Assembly (NCBI RefSeq): GCF_016432865.1
Contig: NC_067398.1
Location: 679,892,001-679,956,000, forward strand
Direction of reading: 5' to 3'
Origin: Antechinus flavipes
Taxonomy: Eukaryota
DNA length: 64,000 bases
Shown: positions 21,442 through 58,900 of the stretch, in pieces
Layout of the letters: each line of letters opens with the position of its first letter
Numbering within the stretch: the stretch's first letter is position 1
Made by a program: the position numbers and the translations under genes
The notes under the pieces: model-generated
What the model saw: the letters and a program-made list of their open reading frames with translations, nothing else
What the model was told of the DNA's origin: nothing
The model's database searches: none

Positions 21442-24288
21442 TTACTCCTCTTCCATTTTCTCCCGCACTTCAGCAGGCAGTCCCTCATACAGAGCCTCCT
21501 CCACCAGCAGCCCTGATTTCTTGAGCCCCCCACAGTTGCCAAGTTCTTCAGGTAAAGCCTCTAACCGGTTACCCTTGAGTTCTAGCCGGCTGAGGGCCTG
21601 CAGCGAAGCCACCCGTGGGGAGAGCTGGCTGAGATGATTGTACCCCAGTAATAGCGTCCTCAGCTTTTGGCAGAAAAAGAGTTCTTCCGGGAGCCCCTCC
21701 AGGGCATTGTAGGAAACAGCAAGATGCTGTAAGTTTTGGAGGTAGCTTACCTCTTGGGGCAAAGAGCGTAAGCCATTGTGAGAAATGTCAAGCAAGCGCA
21801 AGTTGGTGCAGAAACAGAGTTGAGATGGCAGGGTCTCCAATTTGTTGTGACTAAGGTACAACTGCTCTAAACCCTTGAGTTTGCGAATGTGTTCGGGAAC
21901 ATAGGCTATCTGGTTGTGCCATAACTTGAGAGTGACCAGCTTGCGACAATGTTGAAAGCTTAGGATCTCCTCGATGGAGCGGAGGTGGTTGTCCTTCAGG
22001 TCTAGCTCCTGTAACGCAGCCAAGCTAAAGACAGCATGGGGTATCCTCTCCAGCCCACATCCCACCAGCTCTAACTCCCTCAGAGCCATGAGCTTCTTTA
22101 ACCCATTGAGGGTCAGCAGCCGGGCCCCGTCATTGTGGATGCTGAGCCGCTGCAGGTGCCCGGCCACATCGGTCACACTGGGGGGCACTTTGCCTGCATT
22201 GCTTCTCAGGGAGAGGCTCTTGAGGAGCTTCAGCTCTTTGAGGCTCTCCAGATTAGCTGCCCGGCTAAGTTCTGCGGGGAAAAGACCTTCAAGATGAAGC
22301 TCTTCCAGGCCCCGGAGCCCAAACACCCACAGAGGCACTTCTCGAAGCTCCTCACACTTCACCCTCACCACCTTGAGTCGGTCCCTCAAGAAAACAAAGG
22401 AGGAAAAGGGCAGTTTGGCCGGGGAGTGCAGCAGACTGAGCTCTTCCAGGTGGACCAGCTGGGACAGGGTCGGAGGAAAGGTGATGTCGCAGATGGCCTC
22501 CAGCTTGAGAGCCTCGATCTCGCTCAGCTCAAAGACTGTGTCAGGGAGACCAGGCAGCATGCAGAGGGCCAGCTCCAGCCGCTCTCGCCCGTTGCGCTGG
22601 AGCTTCTGGCGCAGTTTCTCTGCTGTCCACTCGTGGTTGAGGTTGAGCTGCTTGAGCCGGCTCTCACTGACCTCCGAGAGGAAGACGGCAAAGCGTTTGG
22701 AGTAGAGAGAATCATATTGGTCAATGAGGTGGAGCATGAAAGCAAAGTCGTTCTTGACATCGGGGATGTCCCCCATGCCTGTCTCCTCCCTCACTGAGCA
22801 GAAAGAATACTCCTTGAGGGGCCGGTGGAAAAGCCAATAGAGTGTGTAGAGACAAGTGAGGCCATAGACACACACGAAGGAGATGTAGCAGAAGGCCAGC
22901 TTGGCGAAGAGGTGAGCCTTGGTGTGGTTGCAGCAGAAGCTGGCGTAGCCCGTGACTTCGGCCGTCTCCACCTGGCAGGCCACCAAGAAGCTGATCTTCT
23001 CCACATAGATGACGTTGTAGATCAGAATCGCCAGAAATTTGCAGACCTTGAGCACTGTCTGACGGATGTACATGGTGTATAAGATGTCGCCCTCCTCCAC
23101 GTGCACCCGGAACTTCTTCACCTTCTCAAACAGAGCTTTGGCCTGCTCTCCCTCCTTTTTGTCCAGCAGGGTGACAGCCGGGGGTTCCATCACCACCTTC
23201 TCTGGCTCCGTCAGCACCTTCTCTGACTCACCTGCCTTTCCCGTCCCCACGATGGCCGTGGCCGGCACCCGTCCCGAGGCGCCCTTGTGGTTCTCACCAG
23301 ACACCTCGGACAGGGCCCGAGTTGTCCACGGGGAGTCGAAGCATTTGCCCAAGATGGAAATGAAGTGCTCGATCTTGGAGCTGGTTCCGGGGAATTTGAA
23401 CCAGAAGCTTGTGCAGACCATGAAGATGAGAGTGTGGATGACAACCAGGTAGGGGAAGTACTTGGCATACCAGTGCAGGGCGGTCTCGTAGCAGAGCTGG
23501 TTGATGAAGCTATATTGTTGTAAGTCCAGATTGTTCTTGAGACCGCTGAGCTCCCGAAGGTCCTCTGAATCCCCAGAGATTGCCCGGGGCAGCGCCCCAC
23601 AAGGCGTCTCTGATAGATTCTCTCGGGGTACATGGCTGGGCAAGCAGATGATCTTGTCCTGAGTTACCTGAGATTTGGGGAGATAGGAACAGAAAGGATA
23701 AATATGCCTAGGGAGGCGGATGGGAAGAGCCTGGCTTCCAGCCCTGCTTTGGTGGCCAGAACTATTCTGTGCCTCAGTTTCTCCTATTGTAAATATAGTC
23801 CCTCCCCACTTTGGCTCTCCCTTCAAAGATTTTACAAAACACACAATTAAAAAGCTCTGTAACTTTAAGGAATTCCTGGAGTGCCGACACTCCTGCTGAT
23901 CACATACAGGTTTGCCAAGTTTTGGGTCCTAGCCTCTAAAAGAACCCTATACTCAAAAGGGATCCCAGAGGATCATCTCTCACATCTTCAATTCAACCTT
24001 ACTCTGCCTTGGCCTTGGCAGCTGCCTTAATGTTCCCTTTTTCTCCCCAATAAAGATCTTCTCTCTCTTCCCCCAAGACTCACCTCCAGCCCACCTTTGG
24101 GATTTTCCCAGTCTCTTTTCATGGTCTGTCCAAAGGACTGGGATCCTCACCTGCAGGGTACAGCCAAAAACCCCGATCATGAGCATGGCCACTGTGATGT
24201 ATTCAGCTAGCACATCCCACCACGGCTTCAGCACTTTGAATGCGGGCTGCTGCTCTGTAAATTGCTTGAATTCAGCCACTGGGATCAT
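21442..24288 (-). CDS. LRRC8E: LRRC8E volume-regulated anion channel subunit, 787 aa; join(24288-24151, 23667-21442)
   Basis: [30 protein letters not shown]...GCTLQ|GTGAGG, then acceptor tctcag|[10 protein letters not shown]; transmembrane segments and C-terminal LRR array; 138+2226=2364 nt, in frame. Confidence 0.98.
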
Positions 24289-42527: not shown

Positions 42528-47855
<5,328 letters not shown>

Positions 47856-48171
47856 GATGCCCTTGTCCCATCCATCCAAAGGACCATTGTGCCCTCTGAA
47901 CTGAAGGCCCCAGCCTGATACCTGCCTCTTGCCTGTTTTCCCACCCGCAGTTCTGTAGCAGGGGGAATTAGGCAAAGGGATAGTCGTGATGATGTTCTAG
48001 CTTCCTAACATCCTTCCATCTGAGTCCTGGAAGGTCTTGGCCTGACCAGCTTCTTGATTCCCATGTATTGTATGTATGTATGTTGTAGATTGCCATTGCT
48101 GGTTTGCTCCTGTGACCTCTAGCTTCTGTGGGTGGCGTGCCTGTGTGTTTTCTAAGGCCTTTTTAGTTTGT

Positions 48172-48177
48172 AATAAA
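48172..48177 (+). terminator. PRR36 polyadenylation signal AATAAA
   Basis: First AATAAA after the stop (about 320 nt), followed by a GT-rich element (gtggggttgtagttgctgtttt). Confidence 0.75.
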
Positions 48178-48305
48178 GATGAGACAGTGGGGTTGTAGTT
48201 GCTGTTTTAGGGGATTGGGCAGTCCAAAACTTTTGGATCTGGGGACTGCCTCCAAGTCCTGCAATTTCTTCTGCTGATTTTGGTGAACAGGTGGAGAACA
48301 AGGCT

Positions 48306-50072
48306 TTAGGGACAGTTTTCTCCCTTCTCCCTGGGGCTCAGGACCCCCAGGGAAGTGCCCGGTGGCTCTTTGGGGCAGGATTCCTGCAGGGGTGGGCACT
48401 TTGGCCTCCCAGGCAACGGCCGGCTCACCCCATGCTGCCGACAGTGAGTGAGCAGGTTGGAGCTCTGGCTGAAGGATTTTCCACATACTCCACAGTGATG
48501 GGGCTTTTCTCCTGTGGAAAGGTAGCCCCGAGCTTGGTGTAAATGGGGGAGCTGGGCAAGGATCATATGGAGGGGCATGGGGTTGAGGAAGGGGGACTAT
48601 AGAGGCATGGTGGTGAAAACCAGTTGTCAAAACTGGGGAGTTATGGACGTATATTAATGGGGAATCTAGTGGGGAGATGTAGAATTCAGATGGCTAGTCG
48701 GTAGGGAAAATGAAGACAATGGAGAGTAATGAAGGGGCTGGAGGAGCCATGAGGATGAATAGGAGGCCTGGCCGAAATATCTCTGGGGAGAGATGAGACT
48801 GACAATGAGCTGGGCTCCCTTCCAACTTCCCTCCTGGAGGGGAAGGGCTATTGCCGGGTAGGAGGGGATGGGGGCGGGCAGACCTCCTGCCGTTTTCCCC
48901 AGACCCCTCGGTGGCGGGTCCTGCAGCCGGGCTGCTCACTCCCAGCCCCTCCCCCCAGCCCTTTTCCTCCTCCTCTTCCCGGGCCGCACCGGTGTGGGTG
49001 AACGTGTGCTTCTTCATGTCGGATTTCTGGTGGAAGCGCTTGGTGCAGAAGGGGCAGGGATGGGGCCGCGTGCCCGAATGGATAAGCAGGTGTGTGGACA
49101 GAGTGGAGGAGCGCCGGAAGCTCTTCCCGCACACGCCGCAGGGGAACAGTCTCTCCTGGGGGCAGGACGGGAGCCGTGGAAGGAGGGACCAGGCTGGGCT
49201 TCCTCCATACCGTCCCATCCCACCCTAGAGGCAGAACATGGGGCTGGGGCAGCAGCCAAGTAGCTTCTGGCCCTTCGCCCCACCCCCACCCCCCCTAAGT
49301 CCTCCTGGGTTACCTTGAATTGATGAGGGTGCTGTGCTGTGGGTGGTGGCAGCGGTAGCTGTGGCTGCAGGTTTGGGGCAGTAACTGCTGTCGGGGGCGG
49401 GGGCTGGGGCTGAGGCTGGGGCTGGGGGCAGTGGCCATCCCAGGAGAGGCCAGCTGGCCCCTGGAGCCCTGGGGTTAGGTCAAATGAATCCAATCACTAT
49501 GAGGTTCCTAGAAGGTGACCCCTCACAAACTGAGGCCTGAGCCCATAGGCCTCCAACTTCCACTTCCCCTAGCCCAGGAGAGCTCTTACCAAAGAGGTCA
49601 GCCTCTGCCTGCGCAGAGGACCCCAGAGAGGAGCCGGCTTCAGGGTTGGGGGACAGGGGCCTCTCAGCCCATGGGCCTCCAAGCCTCCCCACAGAGAGGG
49701 CTGGGTTCCCTGGAGTAAAGCCTATACAAAAAGAACTCATTCTTTGAGAACTGTGAGAAAACCAGATATTCTATTCCCTGACTCTGCTGATGTAAGGTGT
49801 CCTGGTTCCTGTCACCCCCACCCCAACCCTTGCCCCAAACACATCCAAGATTCTTAAATTTAATTTGAATTGGCCATTTCTCCTGTTCTCACTTTCTCAG
49901 CTCCATGGCCTTTCCCTCTCTCCACAACTTGGGCACCCTAGTACCCAGATCTTCCATGAGAGCCCTGCAGAATTCTGGAGCTGGGGATCTTCAGAAAGGA
50001 CAGGCCATACTTACCAATCACCTTTTTTCTTCCAGAGGTTCTTCTGCTTCTTACTAGGAAGGATCGAGGCAT
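48306..50072 (-). CDS. GFI1-family SNAG/C2H2 zinc-finger repressor (GFI1/GFI1B paralog), 238 aa; join(50072-50015, 49721-49590, 49468-49314, 49155-48990, 48511-48306)
   Basis: [15 protein letters not shown]; ZF3-4 [56 protein letters not shown]; ZF5 [26 protein letters not shown]. Donors GTAAGT/GTAAGA/GTAACC/GTGCGG; phases 1,1,0,1; 58+132+155+166+206=717 nt with no internal stop. The exon-3 acceptor is the weakest call. Confidence 0.9.
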
Positions 50073-53000
50073 CTCAGGGCTACCTCACCGGAGGTGGGAG
50101 GTAGAAGAAAGCAGACTAAGATCGATACCTCAACCCCCTTGAGTCCTCCCACTCTGGAGGTTTTAGTTTAGATCAGCCTGGATTCTTCGGTAGCTATCAT
50201 TCAGATGTGCCTTGGAGGATGGGAACTAATGAAAGTGGAGCAACAGGGTGCCTAGGGTCATTCCATCTTCTTCCTCCTCCCCAACCCCAACATACTGGCT
50301 CCAGCTTACTCTGAGGTTCTAAAAGGAAAGTGGCTATCTTGGGGACCTGCCCCTCCCCATATTCCTCACACACACAACTACTACCACCATTGAACACACT
50401 AATTGAGCTCCTGCAAACTGATTTCCTTCCCAGAAGGAATGGCGATCCAGGTATCTCCCTCATCAGAACTGAGCAGGAGCCAAGGCAGCCCCTCTTCTCC
50501 CTGCTCCTGCCATACCATCCTCTGTTCTTGGGCCTCAGGGAATATGGGTTAACCCTAAGCCCCCACAAAAAGAAAGGACAGATACTCAACCCAAAGGTCC
50601 TGGTCACCTCATCTACACCCATGCATGTCCCCCCTTACCTGCCACACTTTATAGCTAATCTTACCTCCACATCAAAGCCTAGCTTCTAGCCTCATCTCCA
50701 CAAAGTCTGTCCTGACCATTCCAACCCAGCCACAGGCTCAGACCTTCCTTTTCTCTACACTCTTTGGAATCTGCTATAAGAATCCCAGAACCTCAGAGCT
50801 AGCAGAGATGTCAGAGGCCAACTAGTCCAACCCGTACATGAGCACAAACTTATTCTACAACTTCCCTTACAAGCCGTCATCCAATCTCTAACAAGAGGCA
50901 GCCCATTCCTCTTTCAGAGCGTTCTTTGCAGCTTTCACTCCAGTTCTGCCCTCTAACGGCAAATTCTGACATCTTCAGTGTTTGTCACCACCACCATGGT
51001 CATTTCCCTTTGTGGTTTCTGTAGTCCCATTTCACCCACCAATTAATTCTCTGTGTAGATTAATAGATTTGTGCACAGCCTTCTTAATATACAAACTGCA
51101 GCACCACCACCCCCATGTTCTTTTTGGACAAGATATGCTTATCCATGGATGACCAGCTCCCTAAGTTTCGATGATACCTATGAGGTTGTGCTTGTTGCTA
51201 AAATCTGTTGCCGTCTCTTGCTAAGAGATAATTTTGACCTCATTCTCAATCTTTTTTCCTTTTAGAAAGCATTATATGGCATAGTGGGGAGGAGGGAAAC
51301 TCGATTTAGAGCCTAGAGAACCTATGCTTTTTCTGCTTCCGTGTGACTGAGCAAGTCACTTTACTTCTTAGGGCCCTAATGTTTTCATCAGTTGAATGAG
51401 GGCATTGAGATGGTTTCTAGTATTGCTTCCAAATTTAAAAGCCTATTACAAACTCCATATATCTTTTTATGGTTTGTATACAGGCATTTCTTCTCACATT
51501 TCCTCTCACATTTGTTTAAAAACTTTGTTGCTCAGGTTACTGAGCCCCTCATCACAGCTGTATCCCCAGTCCTGTGAGATGCCCTAATCACAAGTCCATA
51601 CTAAGTCTTGGAAGGCTTCCAGTACAGTCTTCTGTGGAGGACTTGAGGAAAGACATGGATAAGAATTATACAAGATGGTGAGGAGGGTTCTCATCAGATC
51701 CACTGACATAGACTTATGTCATAGACTCAGTGTGGGACTGGGAAAGACCCAGATTTGAAGTCTTGACTCGAGATTACCTATGAACTTTGCCAAGTCATTT
51801 CACCTGAGCCTTAATTTCCTATCTAGAAAGTGGGGATAACATCAATACTTTCTATTTCACAAGATTGGTTGGGAGATTCAATGATAATGTGTGTATATAC
51901 ACACACATATGTAATATTTTGTATATTTTTAACATTCTACAAGAATATTGCTATTTCTTTTCAGAAGTCTGAACCTACTAACAGATGAATTACCCATGCC
52001 CCTAAATCTTGTTTCCTGTCCAGGACATCAGATTTATTAGGGACACTTAACTTTCAGCTTTCATCTGAAGGGTTCATTCATTCCTATACAAATTAGAGGT
52101 GGATTCTTACTCCCTTACCTCTTATCTGGCCTATTGCTCCAGTCTTCTAAAATAGTCTCTTTCCTATCTCTCCCCTCGGTATTTCATCTACTGGATCCCT
52201 CTCCCTAAAGTCTAGCTCTTGCCATATCACTCACCTTTAAAGCCTGCAGTATCTCGCTATCCCCAGAGGAAAAATATGAGGTCCTCTGTGATGTTCCACA
52301 TTTGCCTTTCTAGCCTTATCTCACATTGCTCTTCATGACTCTAGTCACATCCATCACTCTACTTCCACCCCATCACCCAAGATAGCATAAGATTCTTACC
52401 TGCTGCCTTTGGTTTTGCAATTTCCTTCCCACCTCTCCAATTAAAATTCCACTCCTCTTCCCAAACTACTTGGTCTTACCTCTTCCTGGAATTTCCCCTG
52501 TCCATTCTACCCTTGGTGGGCTCAACTCTACAAACTTCCTCTGCTTATTTTTCCACGTGTCTTCTCCACTCAGTTAAATTGTCTGGAAGCTACTTCAGGA
52601 GAGAAAGGGAGCCTTATACTCCCCTCTTCTCCCGAGACATCATGTTTAGTGACTGATGATGACACCTACTCACATACACCCTCCTTACCCCACCCACACA
52701 TCCTCCTTCACACCCACCCACACAGAGCACTAACATAGACATCTCCCTATCGCACACATCCCTCCAAAACCATCATCACTGATCTACCTCAGCCTCCAAA
52801 GGATCTGGTTTCACAAACCCTCTGTTCATTCTTGCCAATCTCATCCCTTCCCAGTCCTTTTAAACCAGAATTTAAAGCTACAATGAAAGCTCCATATAGT
52901 AATCCAGCAACGGGATTAGGATGAAGTGAAGAAAAGCTTTTCTTAGTTTGGATGCCAATCCTTCCACATTGTGTCCAATTCTCAGGATGTTTTTTCTTTT

Positions 53001-55994: not shown

Positions 55995-58900
55995 TCAGTT
56001 ACCCAGGTTCTGGCCATAGGAAGGGGCCAGCTCATCAGCTTCGCTGTCCGTGCTGCCCTCACTGTCCTTGGCGGGGCGGTCTAGTCGGCGGAAGAACCGG
56101 GCATCTCGGGGGGAGAGAGGATACAGGGCGTCCTGCAGAGCTGCCCCCACTCCCACCCCCACCCCCAGGAGCTCCTCATCGGAGGAGGGCAGAGAGTCCT
56201 CATCCAAATGACGAACCAAATGGAGGCTGTCGAATGCCAAGGGGTCCTCAAATGGGGGCGGGCCCTTCAGTAGCCGAACCTGGGAGATGGGGGAGAGGGA
56301 GATGAGATTGAGAAGGCGGTAGACAGGAGGGATCCAAACCCATATTAGCGGGGAAGATAAGCTGTGGCCAGGATGAGATGGGAGATAAAGGGGATGCTAA
56401 AGAGGACCAAGGGGGATGAGATGGAGGAAACAAAGGAGATGAACAAGGGATTGGGAAGGGAAACAGAAAAGGGAGTGAGCAAGACCTCCTGTGTGGCACA
56501 GGGCCACCAAGAGAGGAGAGATGGCTCTTGGGTGGAGAACACAGAGCAGGAGGAAGTAGTGGGCCACTGTGGGCCCCCCGCCCCCTCAGCAAGAAGGCTG
56601 TTACTGGATTTGAAGGGAAAACGAGGGGCCAGACTGGGGAAGGAGTAATGGGGATCAGGCAGAGGGCTGGTAAGGTTCCGAGGAAAAGGTCTTCCACCTT
56701 AGCCCAGCCCTGATTCACCCAGACACCAGAGCCTGAGGGGGGCGGCTCTGGGGGAGGGGCAGTTACCCTGGGCTCTGATACGGAGGGGTGGCCTGTGGGA
56801 GCCTACAAGTCCCAGCATGCAGTGCGTCGCCTCGGTCCAGCTGCCAGCCTGCCCAGGGTGAGAGACTCTGCTTGGATCAAGACAAGAGTTATGGGGCAGG
56901 GAGCTCCGGCCCTGATGTGGGGCCCATGAGAGGGCCTGAGACACCAAGCACAGCCGGGGAGCCCATACTTGGGAGTCCTGCTTCCTCGACTTCCCTCCTT
57001 TCTCCCTGTGGGCCTGGACCCTCTAACTCGGACAGCTGGCACCTCTCCCTGCTCTTTAGGCACTAATTTTGGCAGGACCAGGGGCTCTGTAGGAGGCCAG
57101 CTCGTAGAACAGGGATCTAGAGAGAGAACAGTTGGGAGATGTTTCCTTCTCTGTCTCGCTCTGCAGTTGTAGGCCCAATCCTGTGTCTGCTCTAAAGACA
57201 GTAGGAAACTCCTGAAACAACAGCAATAAATGATGGAAGATGACTCCTTTAAGCTTTCCAAAGAGCTTTCACCTCCATTATCTCAGGTGATCCTCATACT
57301 ACTTCTGGACAGCAGGGATTTTTACTCCATTTTACAGATTAGGAAAACTAAGGTAAGAAAAGAGGAAGGGCATATATACCCGTGGTCATCAGCTGAGACC
57401 ACAACTCCAGTCTCGTGCCTATTAGGCCATGGCTCCTGGGCTGGCTGTTCTCTATGTGAGTCCTGCCATGTGCCCCCAGGTAGCTAGAGCATGTGTCAGG
57501 AAGGCTCATCTCAGGGATGGTCTGATGTTCTCCGGTGGGCTACAATGGCACTCTGCTCCTTTCTTAGCACAGCACTGGGGAAATTTGCCAGGCAGTCCAG
57601 GGCCCTGGGAATCTCTTCTCTGGGCACACTAGCTCATGCCCTGGCATAAAGGTGGAAGGTCTGCCAGCGTGCCCAAAGAGGGAACGGATGATTTTCCTTC
57701 TTGGAATGCCAGCTGGCTGAGGAGCGACTAAAGAAGTCACAGCCTGGCCCAGCCTAGGACTCACCTCGGCCTTGAGTTCGTCAATCTGATCCTTGAGCTC
57801 ACGGATGTACTGGGAGGAGTCGGAGTGGTTGAGCTGTCCCTGGATCATACCTTCTTCTCTCTGTAAGGCAAAAACATGCCCCCTCCCAGGTCACCGAGGA
57901 GAGGAACATGGGGACGAAGACTTGCCTCCCACCAAGCTCTCCTCGTGGGTGGCGACCTCACCTGAATCTCCAGCTCTGCGATCCGCTGCCTCATCTCTGC
58001 CACAGCAGCCATGCTGTCTGCCTCCCTGAGCCTTACTGCCATCACCTCCTCCTTGCTCTGGAGGGGCAAAAGCAGCAGGAAAGCACAGGGAGCTGACTCG
58101 GGGGAGGGAAAGAGGAAGGAAGAGAGGGAGAGGGGCGGGATGGGGGCCCGGCAGCCCGAGCTGGACAGCAAGCCCTGGAAGATGGGGAAAGGCTGCAGAG
58201 CACAGCTTGGAGGTGGGGGCTAGAGGGTGGGGGCCCACCTTACACTCAGCCTCAGCATGCTTGCGTTTGCTCTCACTCAGTTGGGTCTGCAGGCCTTTGT
58301 TCTGAGCCACCAGGTAATGGAGCTTTTCCTGCAGGCCCGCACTCTCTGCTTCTACACGGTTCAGCAAGTTTCGATGGATCTGGTCCTAGGGGGAGGGAAG
58401 TCACCAGCAAGTGACTAAGGGCTCAGGCAGTGCAGGGGGAGCTTAGAGCCAGACAACGAGGTGACCTCTGGCCTGTAACTGACAAGGTACGGGGCTGGCA
58501 CAGCCCAGTGGGGTTCATGAGGTGAGGCAGACGGATGGCCTAAGCTTGGTAGTGGGGCAGAGGAGGGCGCAGGCCAGGGAAGACGGGGTCCTTGCCCATT
58601 CCTCATCGTGGGGAGGCCCTCTGACCTGTGTCTCCAGCTCCACCACTCGCTGCCGCAGCTCCCTCCCTTCAGCCAGAGCATGGGCCTCTCGCAGCCGGAC
58701 GGTCATCAGTTCATCCTGTAGGTCACTAAGGGCCAGCTTCCGGGGAGACTCCTTCCATCTCCCTCCCCGGGAGAGGTGGGCCTATCCAGGAGCGAGGAAA
58801 GGGTTTTAGAGCCAGAAGAGACCTCCAAAGGGAAGATCAGCCTCCTGGAATCTCCAGTCATCTTTTTGAGTGTGAAATGGCTCTTAATCAGCATCTTTCA

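Follow-up and report, generated by a model that had tools for sequence, protein, structure and literature searches.

We analysed a window of 64,000 nucleotides (nt) of the Antechinus flavipes genome (NC_067398.1, positions 679,892,001-679,956,000 of assembly GCF_016432865.1; 0 N letters), in which a five-exon gene lies on the minus strand at 48306-50072 (coordinates are those of the window throughout). The evidence makes it likely that this is an expressed gene for a third SNAG zinc-finger repressor of the GFI1/GFI1B family, an old vertebrate paralog linked to EVI5L, with predicted binding to AATC-core sites and predicted recruitment of LSD1/CoREST. The reviews of the field treat vertebrate GFI biology as that of two genes, GFI1 and GFI1B, which control blood stem cells, neutrophils, red cells, platelets, inner-ear hair cells, and gut secretory cells (PMC5368270, PMC7649360). 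An earlier note on this DNA had read the gene as an intact third member of the family, placed between PRR36 and EVI5L and retained in marsupials.

Gene Model and Family Membership

The model rebuilt from the window is formed by five exons of 58/132/155/166/206 nt, which are joined through four GT..AG introns (phases 1, 1, 0, 1) into a 717-nt open reading frame coding for a protein of 238 aa. The exons and the predicted protein put forward in the earlier note were reproduced identically, and the protein coincides over 238/238 residues with RefSeq XP_051828474.1 ("zinc finger protein 628-like", Antechinus flavipes), a model that an independent pipeline had built from the identical five exons. 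Since the four GT-AG introns stand at family-typical positions, a processed pseudogene (retrocopy) was ruled out, as had already been argued. The description of the main finger exon as CpG-rich was also correct, the observed/expected CpG ratio being 0.82 in exon 4 vs 0.14-0.38 in the other exons; that of the locus was 0.23.

The Antechinus protein has an N-terminal SNAG domain and, according to Pfam, three C2H2 zinc fingers. The proteins closest to it were all GFI1 or GFI1B, with 70-82% identity over exon 4. In the alignment the three fingers are the counterparts of GFI1 fingers 3, 4, and 5, and the canonical base-reading residues are identical to those of both GFI1 and GFI1B (12/12; positions -1, +2, +3, and +6 read R/S/T/T, Q/S/D/K, and Q/S/N/T in the three fingers). 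The top single-stretch match among solved structures was 2kmk, a chain with GFI1 fingers 3-5 (138.6 bits); the SNAG peptide gave only chance ribosomal matches in this library, which holds no chains under 20 residues. Residues 1-7 of the SNAG domain (MPRSFLV) are identical to those of GFI1 and GFI1B, and the domain has its own phase-1 exon as in platypus GFI1B.

The exon structure was compared by exact spliced mapping. Coding exons of 100/132/251/138/166/179 nt were obtained for platypus GFI1B, of 109/255/245/144/166/191 nt for a shark gene named "Gfi-1b-like", of 81/207/206/144/166/215 nt for the turtle gene, and of 58/132/143/166/206 nt for the third gene of the Tasmanian devil; the platypus RefSeq model of the third gene was not fitted from its annotated start. 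Platypus GFI1B shares the 166-nt exon, phases included, with the genes of shark, turtle, alligator, and devil, and the phases 1, 1, 0, (0), 1 are common to platypus GFI1B and the shark, turtle, alligator, and marsupial genes; the phase pattern and the 166-nt exon that the earlier note ascribed to the GFI1 gene structure are matched in platypus GFI1B. In comparison with the family, the marsupial gene is without just one exon, that of 138/144 nt and phase 0-0 which codes for the second half of finger 1 and the whole of finger 2. The finger set of the family is not complete, as there are three fingers only, the finger 1-2 exon being absent and the last exon stopping after finger 5; the non-mammal orthologs have four to six fingers. 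Sequence, exon structure, and the trees described below together support the assignment of the window gene to the GFI1 family.

The nearest known architecture is found in GFI1B, where skipping of the finger 1-2 exon gives a 284-aa isoform without fingers 1-2 (PMC5368270). As read from its exons, the marsupial and monotreme protein is a genome-fixed version of this short architecture, with SNAG and fingers 3-5, the same base-reading residues, matching exon phases, and the same exon missing. It differs from GFI1B in that the window gene is at another locus, where it adjoins EVI5L, is without finger 6, has Arg at SNAG position 8, and has an unrelated linker; the fingers of exon 4 are ~78% identical, and the loss of fingers 1-2 is fixed in the third gene, whereas in GFI1B it is a product of alternative splicing. 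With GFI1 it has in common the family, the domain logic, and the tandem location downstream of an EVI5-family gene, but GFI1 is a protein of 422 aa with six fingers and a long intermediate domain, and it forms a clade of its own. The SNAIL/SCRATCH repressors, which were among the nearest feature-based clusters, also carry an N-terminal SNAG followed by C-terminal C2H2 fingers, but these fingers are just distantly similar and bind E-box sites, and this is not the nearest family by sequence.

Two variants of the transcript were considered. The AG at 49226-49225 is a possible alternative acceptor of exon 4, and the wombat RefSeq isoform X1 has a 23-aa insert where the Antechinus extension would fall. 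The symmetric 132-nt exon 2 is skipped in the RefSeq isoforms wombat X3 and koala X2, and alternative splicing of the linker may be conserved among marsupials.

Splicing in a Close Relative

The RNA evidence consisted of assembled contigs of four RNA runs over 48100-50300, shallow and from Tasmanian devil. Three of the four junctions predicted for the gene were seen in this RNA. The joint of intron 4 (exons 4-5) was exact in two runs from two studies, with flanks of 41 and 145 nt, that of intron 2 (exons 2-3) was exact in two runs, and that of intron 1 (exons 1-2) was exact in one run (49720|50014, cut +1). The last of these joins to exon 2 the 58-nt SNAG exon at 50015..50072, whose existence had been claimed in the earlier note. 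At each of the three joints the minus strand shows GT-AG ends. The RNA contigs match the alleles of the devil genome at 40/40 listed variant positions, and therefore the RNA derives from the devil ortholog; the divergence between devil and window at this locus is ~5-9%.

Selection and Conservation

Codon analysis was carried out as pairwise comparisons with devil, platypus, alligator, and turtle. The ratio of nonsynonymous to synonymous substitution (dN/dS) between window and devil was 0.32 for the complete coding sequence (bootstrap interval 0.16-0.70). Between window and platypus, over the three fingers, dN was 0.040 and dS 0.876, which gives a ratio of 0.046. Purifying selection on the third gene is supported by these values, and together with the splicing in a close relative they uphold the claim of an intact, maintained gene.

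The identity with Gracilinanus, an American marsupial, was 79/82 in the fingers, 52/88 in the linker, and 23/41 in the tail, and exon 3 of devil has a 12-nt in-frame deletion with respect to the window. Intact orthologs were found in at least eight marsupials, Australian and American, and in platypus. The retention in marsupials that had been proposed stands, but the gene is not limited to them, as it is also present in platypus, alligators, and turtles.

Devil, platypus, and alligator all retain the SNAG exon together with its phase-1 donor. Two RefSeq models, platypus XP_028906965.2 and Chinese alligator XP_025048534.1, appear to be without the true N-terminus, because their annotated starts are 3' of an intact SNAG exon followed by a phase-1 GT donor (L004:9632-9707 in platypus, L001:9755-9827 in Chinese alligator). 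The SNAG N-terminus is present in a platypus UniProt model and in the American alligator model.

Phylogeny and Distribution

The tree of fingers 3-6 unites turtles, alligator, monotremes, and marsupials in one clade (95/97, starred) apart from GFI1 and GFI1B, and the mammal third genes are a nested clade within it (100/98). When alligator and other long branches were removed, the mammal clade still joined the turtles (90/70). The full-length tree gave three clades, each of them with cartilaginous fish and bony vertebrates: GFI1 (90/62), GFI1B (94/90), and the third (87/99). Within the third clade zebra shark branches first, then paddlefish with milkfish, then caecilians, then turtles with alligator, and the starred inner nodes follow the species tree. 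The support for this deep clade is moderate.

A search with the alligator protein recovered turtle orthologs in many species, with SNAG, a degenerate finger 1-2 region, and fingers 3-6. Derived residues in fingers 3 and 4 are common to the platypus, alligator, and turtle orthologs. The "Gfi-1b-like" genes that RefSeq lists for turtles, alligators, caecilians, carpet sharks, and paddlefish would be orthologs or co-orthologs, and caecilians, sharks, and paddlefish probably have the third gene as well; the likeness includes the MPRSFLVR start, the 166-nt exon, and, in proteins that retain finger 6, the C-terminal motif RRHQE(T/I)H. These genes code for 290-371 aa and keep finger 6, with the finger 1-2 exon degenerate (turtle, alligator) or intact (shark), whereas the mammal third genes have lost both finger 6 and the finger 1-2 exon.

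In the milkfish Chanos chanos, a "Gfi-1b" groups with the third-clade "Gfi-1b-like" gene of the paddlefish Polyodon (100/97), on a long branch, and stays apart from the gfi1b of teleosts. It may be that the third paralog persists in some teleosts, annotated there as GFI1B.

In two protein searches, no third gene of placentals was found among many placental GFI1 and GFI1B entries (proteins of ~96-313 aa), and judging by annotated proteins the gene appears to have been lost in placentals. A profile made from seven orthologs was compared with 1.84 billion representatives; the summed repeat matches of long multi-finger proteins dominate this result, which has no bearing on the distribution.

Synteny

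The location between PRR36 and EVI5L given in the earlier note was verified by an exon with the BTBD8_C domain on one side of the gene and by EVI5-family exons on the other. BTBD8_C is also found in the neighbours of the third gene in devil and Petaurus, and the devil gene call at the position aligned to the EVI5 exons of the window has RabGAP-TBC and EVI5 domains. An EVI5-family gene is located 6-7 kb upstream, on the same strand as the third gene, in devil, platypus, and alligator, and synteny was observed in four amniote lineages. The exons of the alligator upstream gene are 100%, 97%, and 77% identical to the marsupial ones, and 81% and 57% identical to an EVI5 fragment of sturgeon; being nearer to marsupial EVI5L than to sturgeon EVI5, this gene fits the orthology of the upstream gene to EVI5L.

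In turtle (L006:19885-29159) and in the caecilian Rhinatrema, the convergent downstream gene has TGFBR3_N and zona pellucida domains and no PRR36-type domain, and therefore the local gene order differs from that of mammals; this TGFBR3-like gene was the sole neighbour seen at these loci. Around the third-clade genes of shark, paddlefish, and caecilian no synteny was recovered, and there was no neighbour gene at the shark locus. A gene model of the sturgeon Acipenser sinensis joins the EVI5 coiled-coil C-terminus to GFI1 fingers 3-6, evidently by read-through of an EVI5-GFI1 tandem.

Mammalian GFI1 adjoins EVI5. In human, GFI1, EVI5, BTBD8, TGFBR3, and LRRC8B-D are neighbours at 1p22, and EVI5L, PRR36, LRRC8E, and TGFBR3L at 19p13.2. 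Considering these orders along with that of the window, the third-gene locus would be the expected duplicate of the GFI1 position.

Proposed Function and Rival Explanations

We propose that the gene would descend from an old vertebrate paralog situated just downstream of EVI5L, as GFI1 is beside EVI5, and that the mammal protein would have been reduced to the SNAG domain, a fast-evolving linker, and fingers 3-5, the DNA-binding ones in GFI1. GFI1 and GFI1B bind the AATC core through fingers 3-5 and recruit LSD1 with CoREST and deacetylases through the 20-aa SNAG (PMC7649360). Since all the canonical base-reading residues are unchanged, the third protein is expected to recognize the same AATC-core sites as GFI1/GFI1B, and its SNAG domain is predicted to recruit LSD1/CoREST and to repress the targets with such sites. 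A repressor at GFI-type sites is predicted because both modules, SNAG and fingers 3-5, are kept together with the base-reading residues; it would be a permanent equivalent of the short GFI1B isoform.

Several observations speak against this interpretation. The third protein is without fingers 1, 2, and 6, and position 8 of its SNAG domain is Arg, not Lys as in GFI1/GFI1B; these two features, along with a linker unrelated to that of GFI1/GFI1B, may entail functional differences. None of the four devil RNA runs showed the junction of exons 3 and 4, and introns 2-4 are covered by unspliced contigs of similar low depth. The RNA is from devil, not from Antechinus, and expression in the devil samples appears low, given the low depth of the contigs, spliced and unspliced. 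The full-length tree leaves the mammal genes unplaced, on a very long stem branch of ~5 changes per column, because their linker does not align, and a duplication of GFI1B in the mammal stem was not rejected by the finger-only tree in the approximately unbiased (AU) test (p = 0.085).

The chief functional rival is that the protein is functional but, short of full LSD1-dependent repression, mainly competes for GFI1/GFI1B sites or modulates without partners; we consider this unlikely. The substitution of Arg for Lys at SNAG position 8, present in every third-clade protein seen, would agree with such a role, but the SNAG domain of SNAIL1 also has Arg at position 8 and binds LSD1, and SNAG residues 1-7 do not differ from those of GFI1. 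Methylation of Lys 8 is reported, in titles cited in PMC7649360, as needed for LSD1 recruitment by GFI1/GFI1B; nevertheless, conservation of the SNAG domain extends from shark to marsupial, which would be hard to explain if the domain were inert. It is through fingers 1, 2, and 6, absent here, that GFI1 contacts partner proteins (PMC7649360). Short and long GFI1B isoforms differ in behaviour (PMC5368270), although the short one is reported to recruit LSD1-CoREST (Laurent et al. 2012, by its title as cited in PMC5368270).

It is very improbable that the gene is a transcribed functionless relic, that is, a paralog drifting to loss whose frame has stayed open by chance. Low RNA depth and unspliced contigs, the fast evolution of linker and tail, the disappearance of 3/6 ancestral fingers, and the apparent loss of the entire gene in placentals could all be read in this way, but the open frame and the exon layout are kept in Australian and American marsupials and platypus, the dN/dS of the fingers is as low as 0.046 across the marsupial-monotreme split (dS about 0.9), and the SNAG exon with its phase-1 donor is kept as far as platypus and alligator.

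The least probable explanation, a lineage-specific duplicate of GFI1B or GFI1 of the marsupials or the mammal stem that came to lie beside EVI5L by chance, draws on the few informative sites left by the high conservation of the fingers and on the non-rejection of the mammal third gene with mammal GFI1B in the finger-only tree, and it is largely refuted, as a marsupial-only duplication of GFI1B was rejected (AU p = 0.006), the platypus, alligator, and turtle orthologs with their shared derived finger 3-4 residues are grouped with the mammals, alligator, platypus, and marsupials have an equally oriented EVI5L-type gene upstream, and platypus has its GFI1B and its third gene on separate chromosome records. 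The idea of a recent GFI1B duplicate, named in the earlier note as what would count against its reading, fails in its marsupial form by the same test. The AU test of the mammal third gene with mammal GFI1 was uninformative, as there were identical GFI1 rows on both sides.

Returning to an old third paralog with repressor function, on balance we favour a history in which it would have come from the early vertebrate genome duplications, linked to EVI5L/PRR36/LRRC8E as GFI1 is to EVI5/BTBD8, would have persisted in groups from sharks to marsupials and disappeared in the stem of the placentals, and would have been cut in monotremes and marsupials to SNAG and fingers 3-5, where it would serve blood, sensory or neuroendocrine lineages as a third repressor of the GFI type that targets GFI1/GFI1B sites. 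If this is true, the ancestral vertebrate GFI set had at least three genes, one of which was lost by placentals, and monotremes, marsupials, turtles, crocodilians, and some fishes run GFI programmes with an extra repressor, unlike mouse and human. The mammal form would be a natural minimal GFI protein, with SNAG and fingers 3-5, which could reveal what fingers 1, 2, 6 and the intermediate domain are needed for.

Database Names and Novelty

The RefSeq naming of the third-gene orthologs is inconsistent and mostly misleading. The ortholog is ZNF836-like in Tasmanian devil and in Petaurus, an uncharacterised LOC in Sminthopsis, Gfi-1b-like / ZNF672-like in wombat, ZNF316-like / Gfi-1b-like in koala, ZNF358-like in Gracilinanus, and Gfi-1b-like in platypus. 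An identity as ZNF358, ZNF628 or ZNF836 was rejected, the closest sequences being all GFI-family proteins. With the orthologs dispersed in RefSeq as ZNF628-like, 836-like, 358-like, 672-like, 316-like, and Gfi-1b-like, orthology-based analyses are likely to miss them because of these unrelated names.

As regards prior description, the models were already in RefSeq under other names, but no paper on a third vertebrate GFI1 paralog was found in the literature; the "GFI1C" that appears there refers to Gfi1Cre mice and not to a third paralog. The gene model is thus already known, and what is new is the identity and the history of a third GFI1-family gene.

Other Features of the Window

The coordinates of the exons and of the neighbouring genes are collected in Table 1.

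Table 1. Coding exons of the third GFI1-family gene and neighbouring features in the window.
Feature	Position	Strand	Description
Coding exon 1	50015..50072	-	58 nt; ATG; GTAAGT donor; ends in phase 1; encodes SNAG domain
Coding exon 2	49590..49721	-	132 nt; phase 1 to 1; part of poorly conserved linker
Coding exon 3	49314..49468	-	155 nt; phase 1 to 0; proline- and glutamine-rich linker
Possible alternative 5' extension of exon 4	49156..49224	-	AG at 49226-49225 adds 23 in-frame codons, no stop
Coding exon 4	48990..49155	-	166 nt; phase 0 to 1; zinc fingers equivalent to GFI1 fingers 3 and 4; zf-C2H2 (Pfam)
Coding exon 5	48306..48511	-	206 nt including TAA stop; finger equivalent to GFI1 finger 5, then 41-aa tail; without finger 6
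PRR36-type gene, last coding exon	47376-47852	+	BTBD8_C, Pfam PF15363, E = 7e-21; convergent neighbour; exon end also given as 47855
EVI5-family gene, 3' coding exons (read as EVI5L)	56031..58778	-	tblastn matches; upstream tandem neighbour
LRRC8 gene	21445-23844	-	800-codon single-exon open frame; LRRC8 pannexin-like domain and leucine-rich repeats

The LRRC8 gene is probably LRRC8E, which fits the gene order of human 19p13.2. The body of the PRR36-type gene (44400-46150, plus strand) is long and internally repetitive, with a GC skew of about -0.7 on the plus strand, and its comparison with the devil locus gave many self-matches of 67-75% identity.

In one devil run, a 1614-nt contig with a depth of 62 (~4 in the GFI-like exons) extends from lower coordinates to 48311, which is only some bases beyond the stop codon of the GFI-like gene at 48306-48308 (region 48100-48311). 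This contig is probably the 3' untranslated region of PRR36; if so, the convergent PRR36 and GFI-like genes overlap antisense in their 3' untranslated regions.

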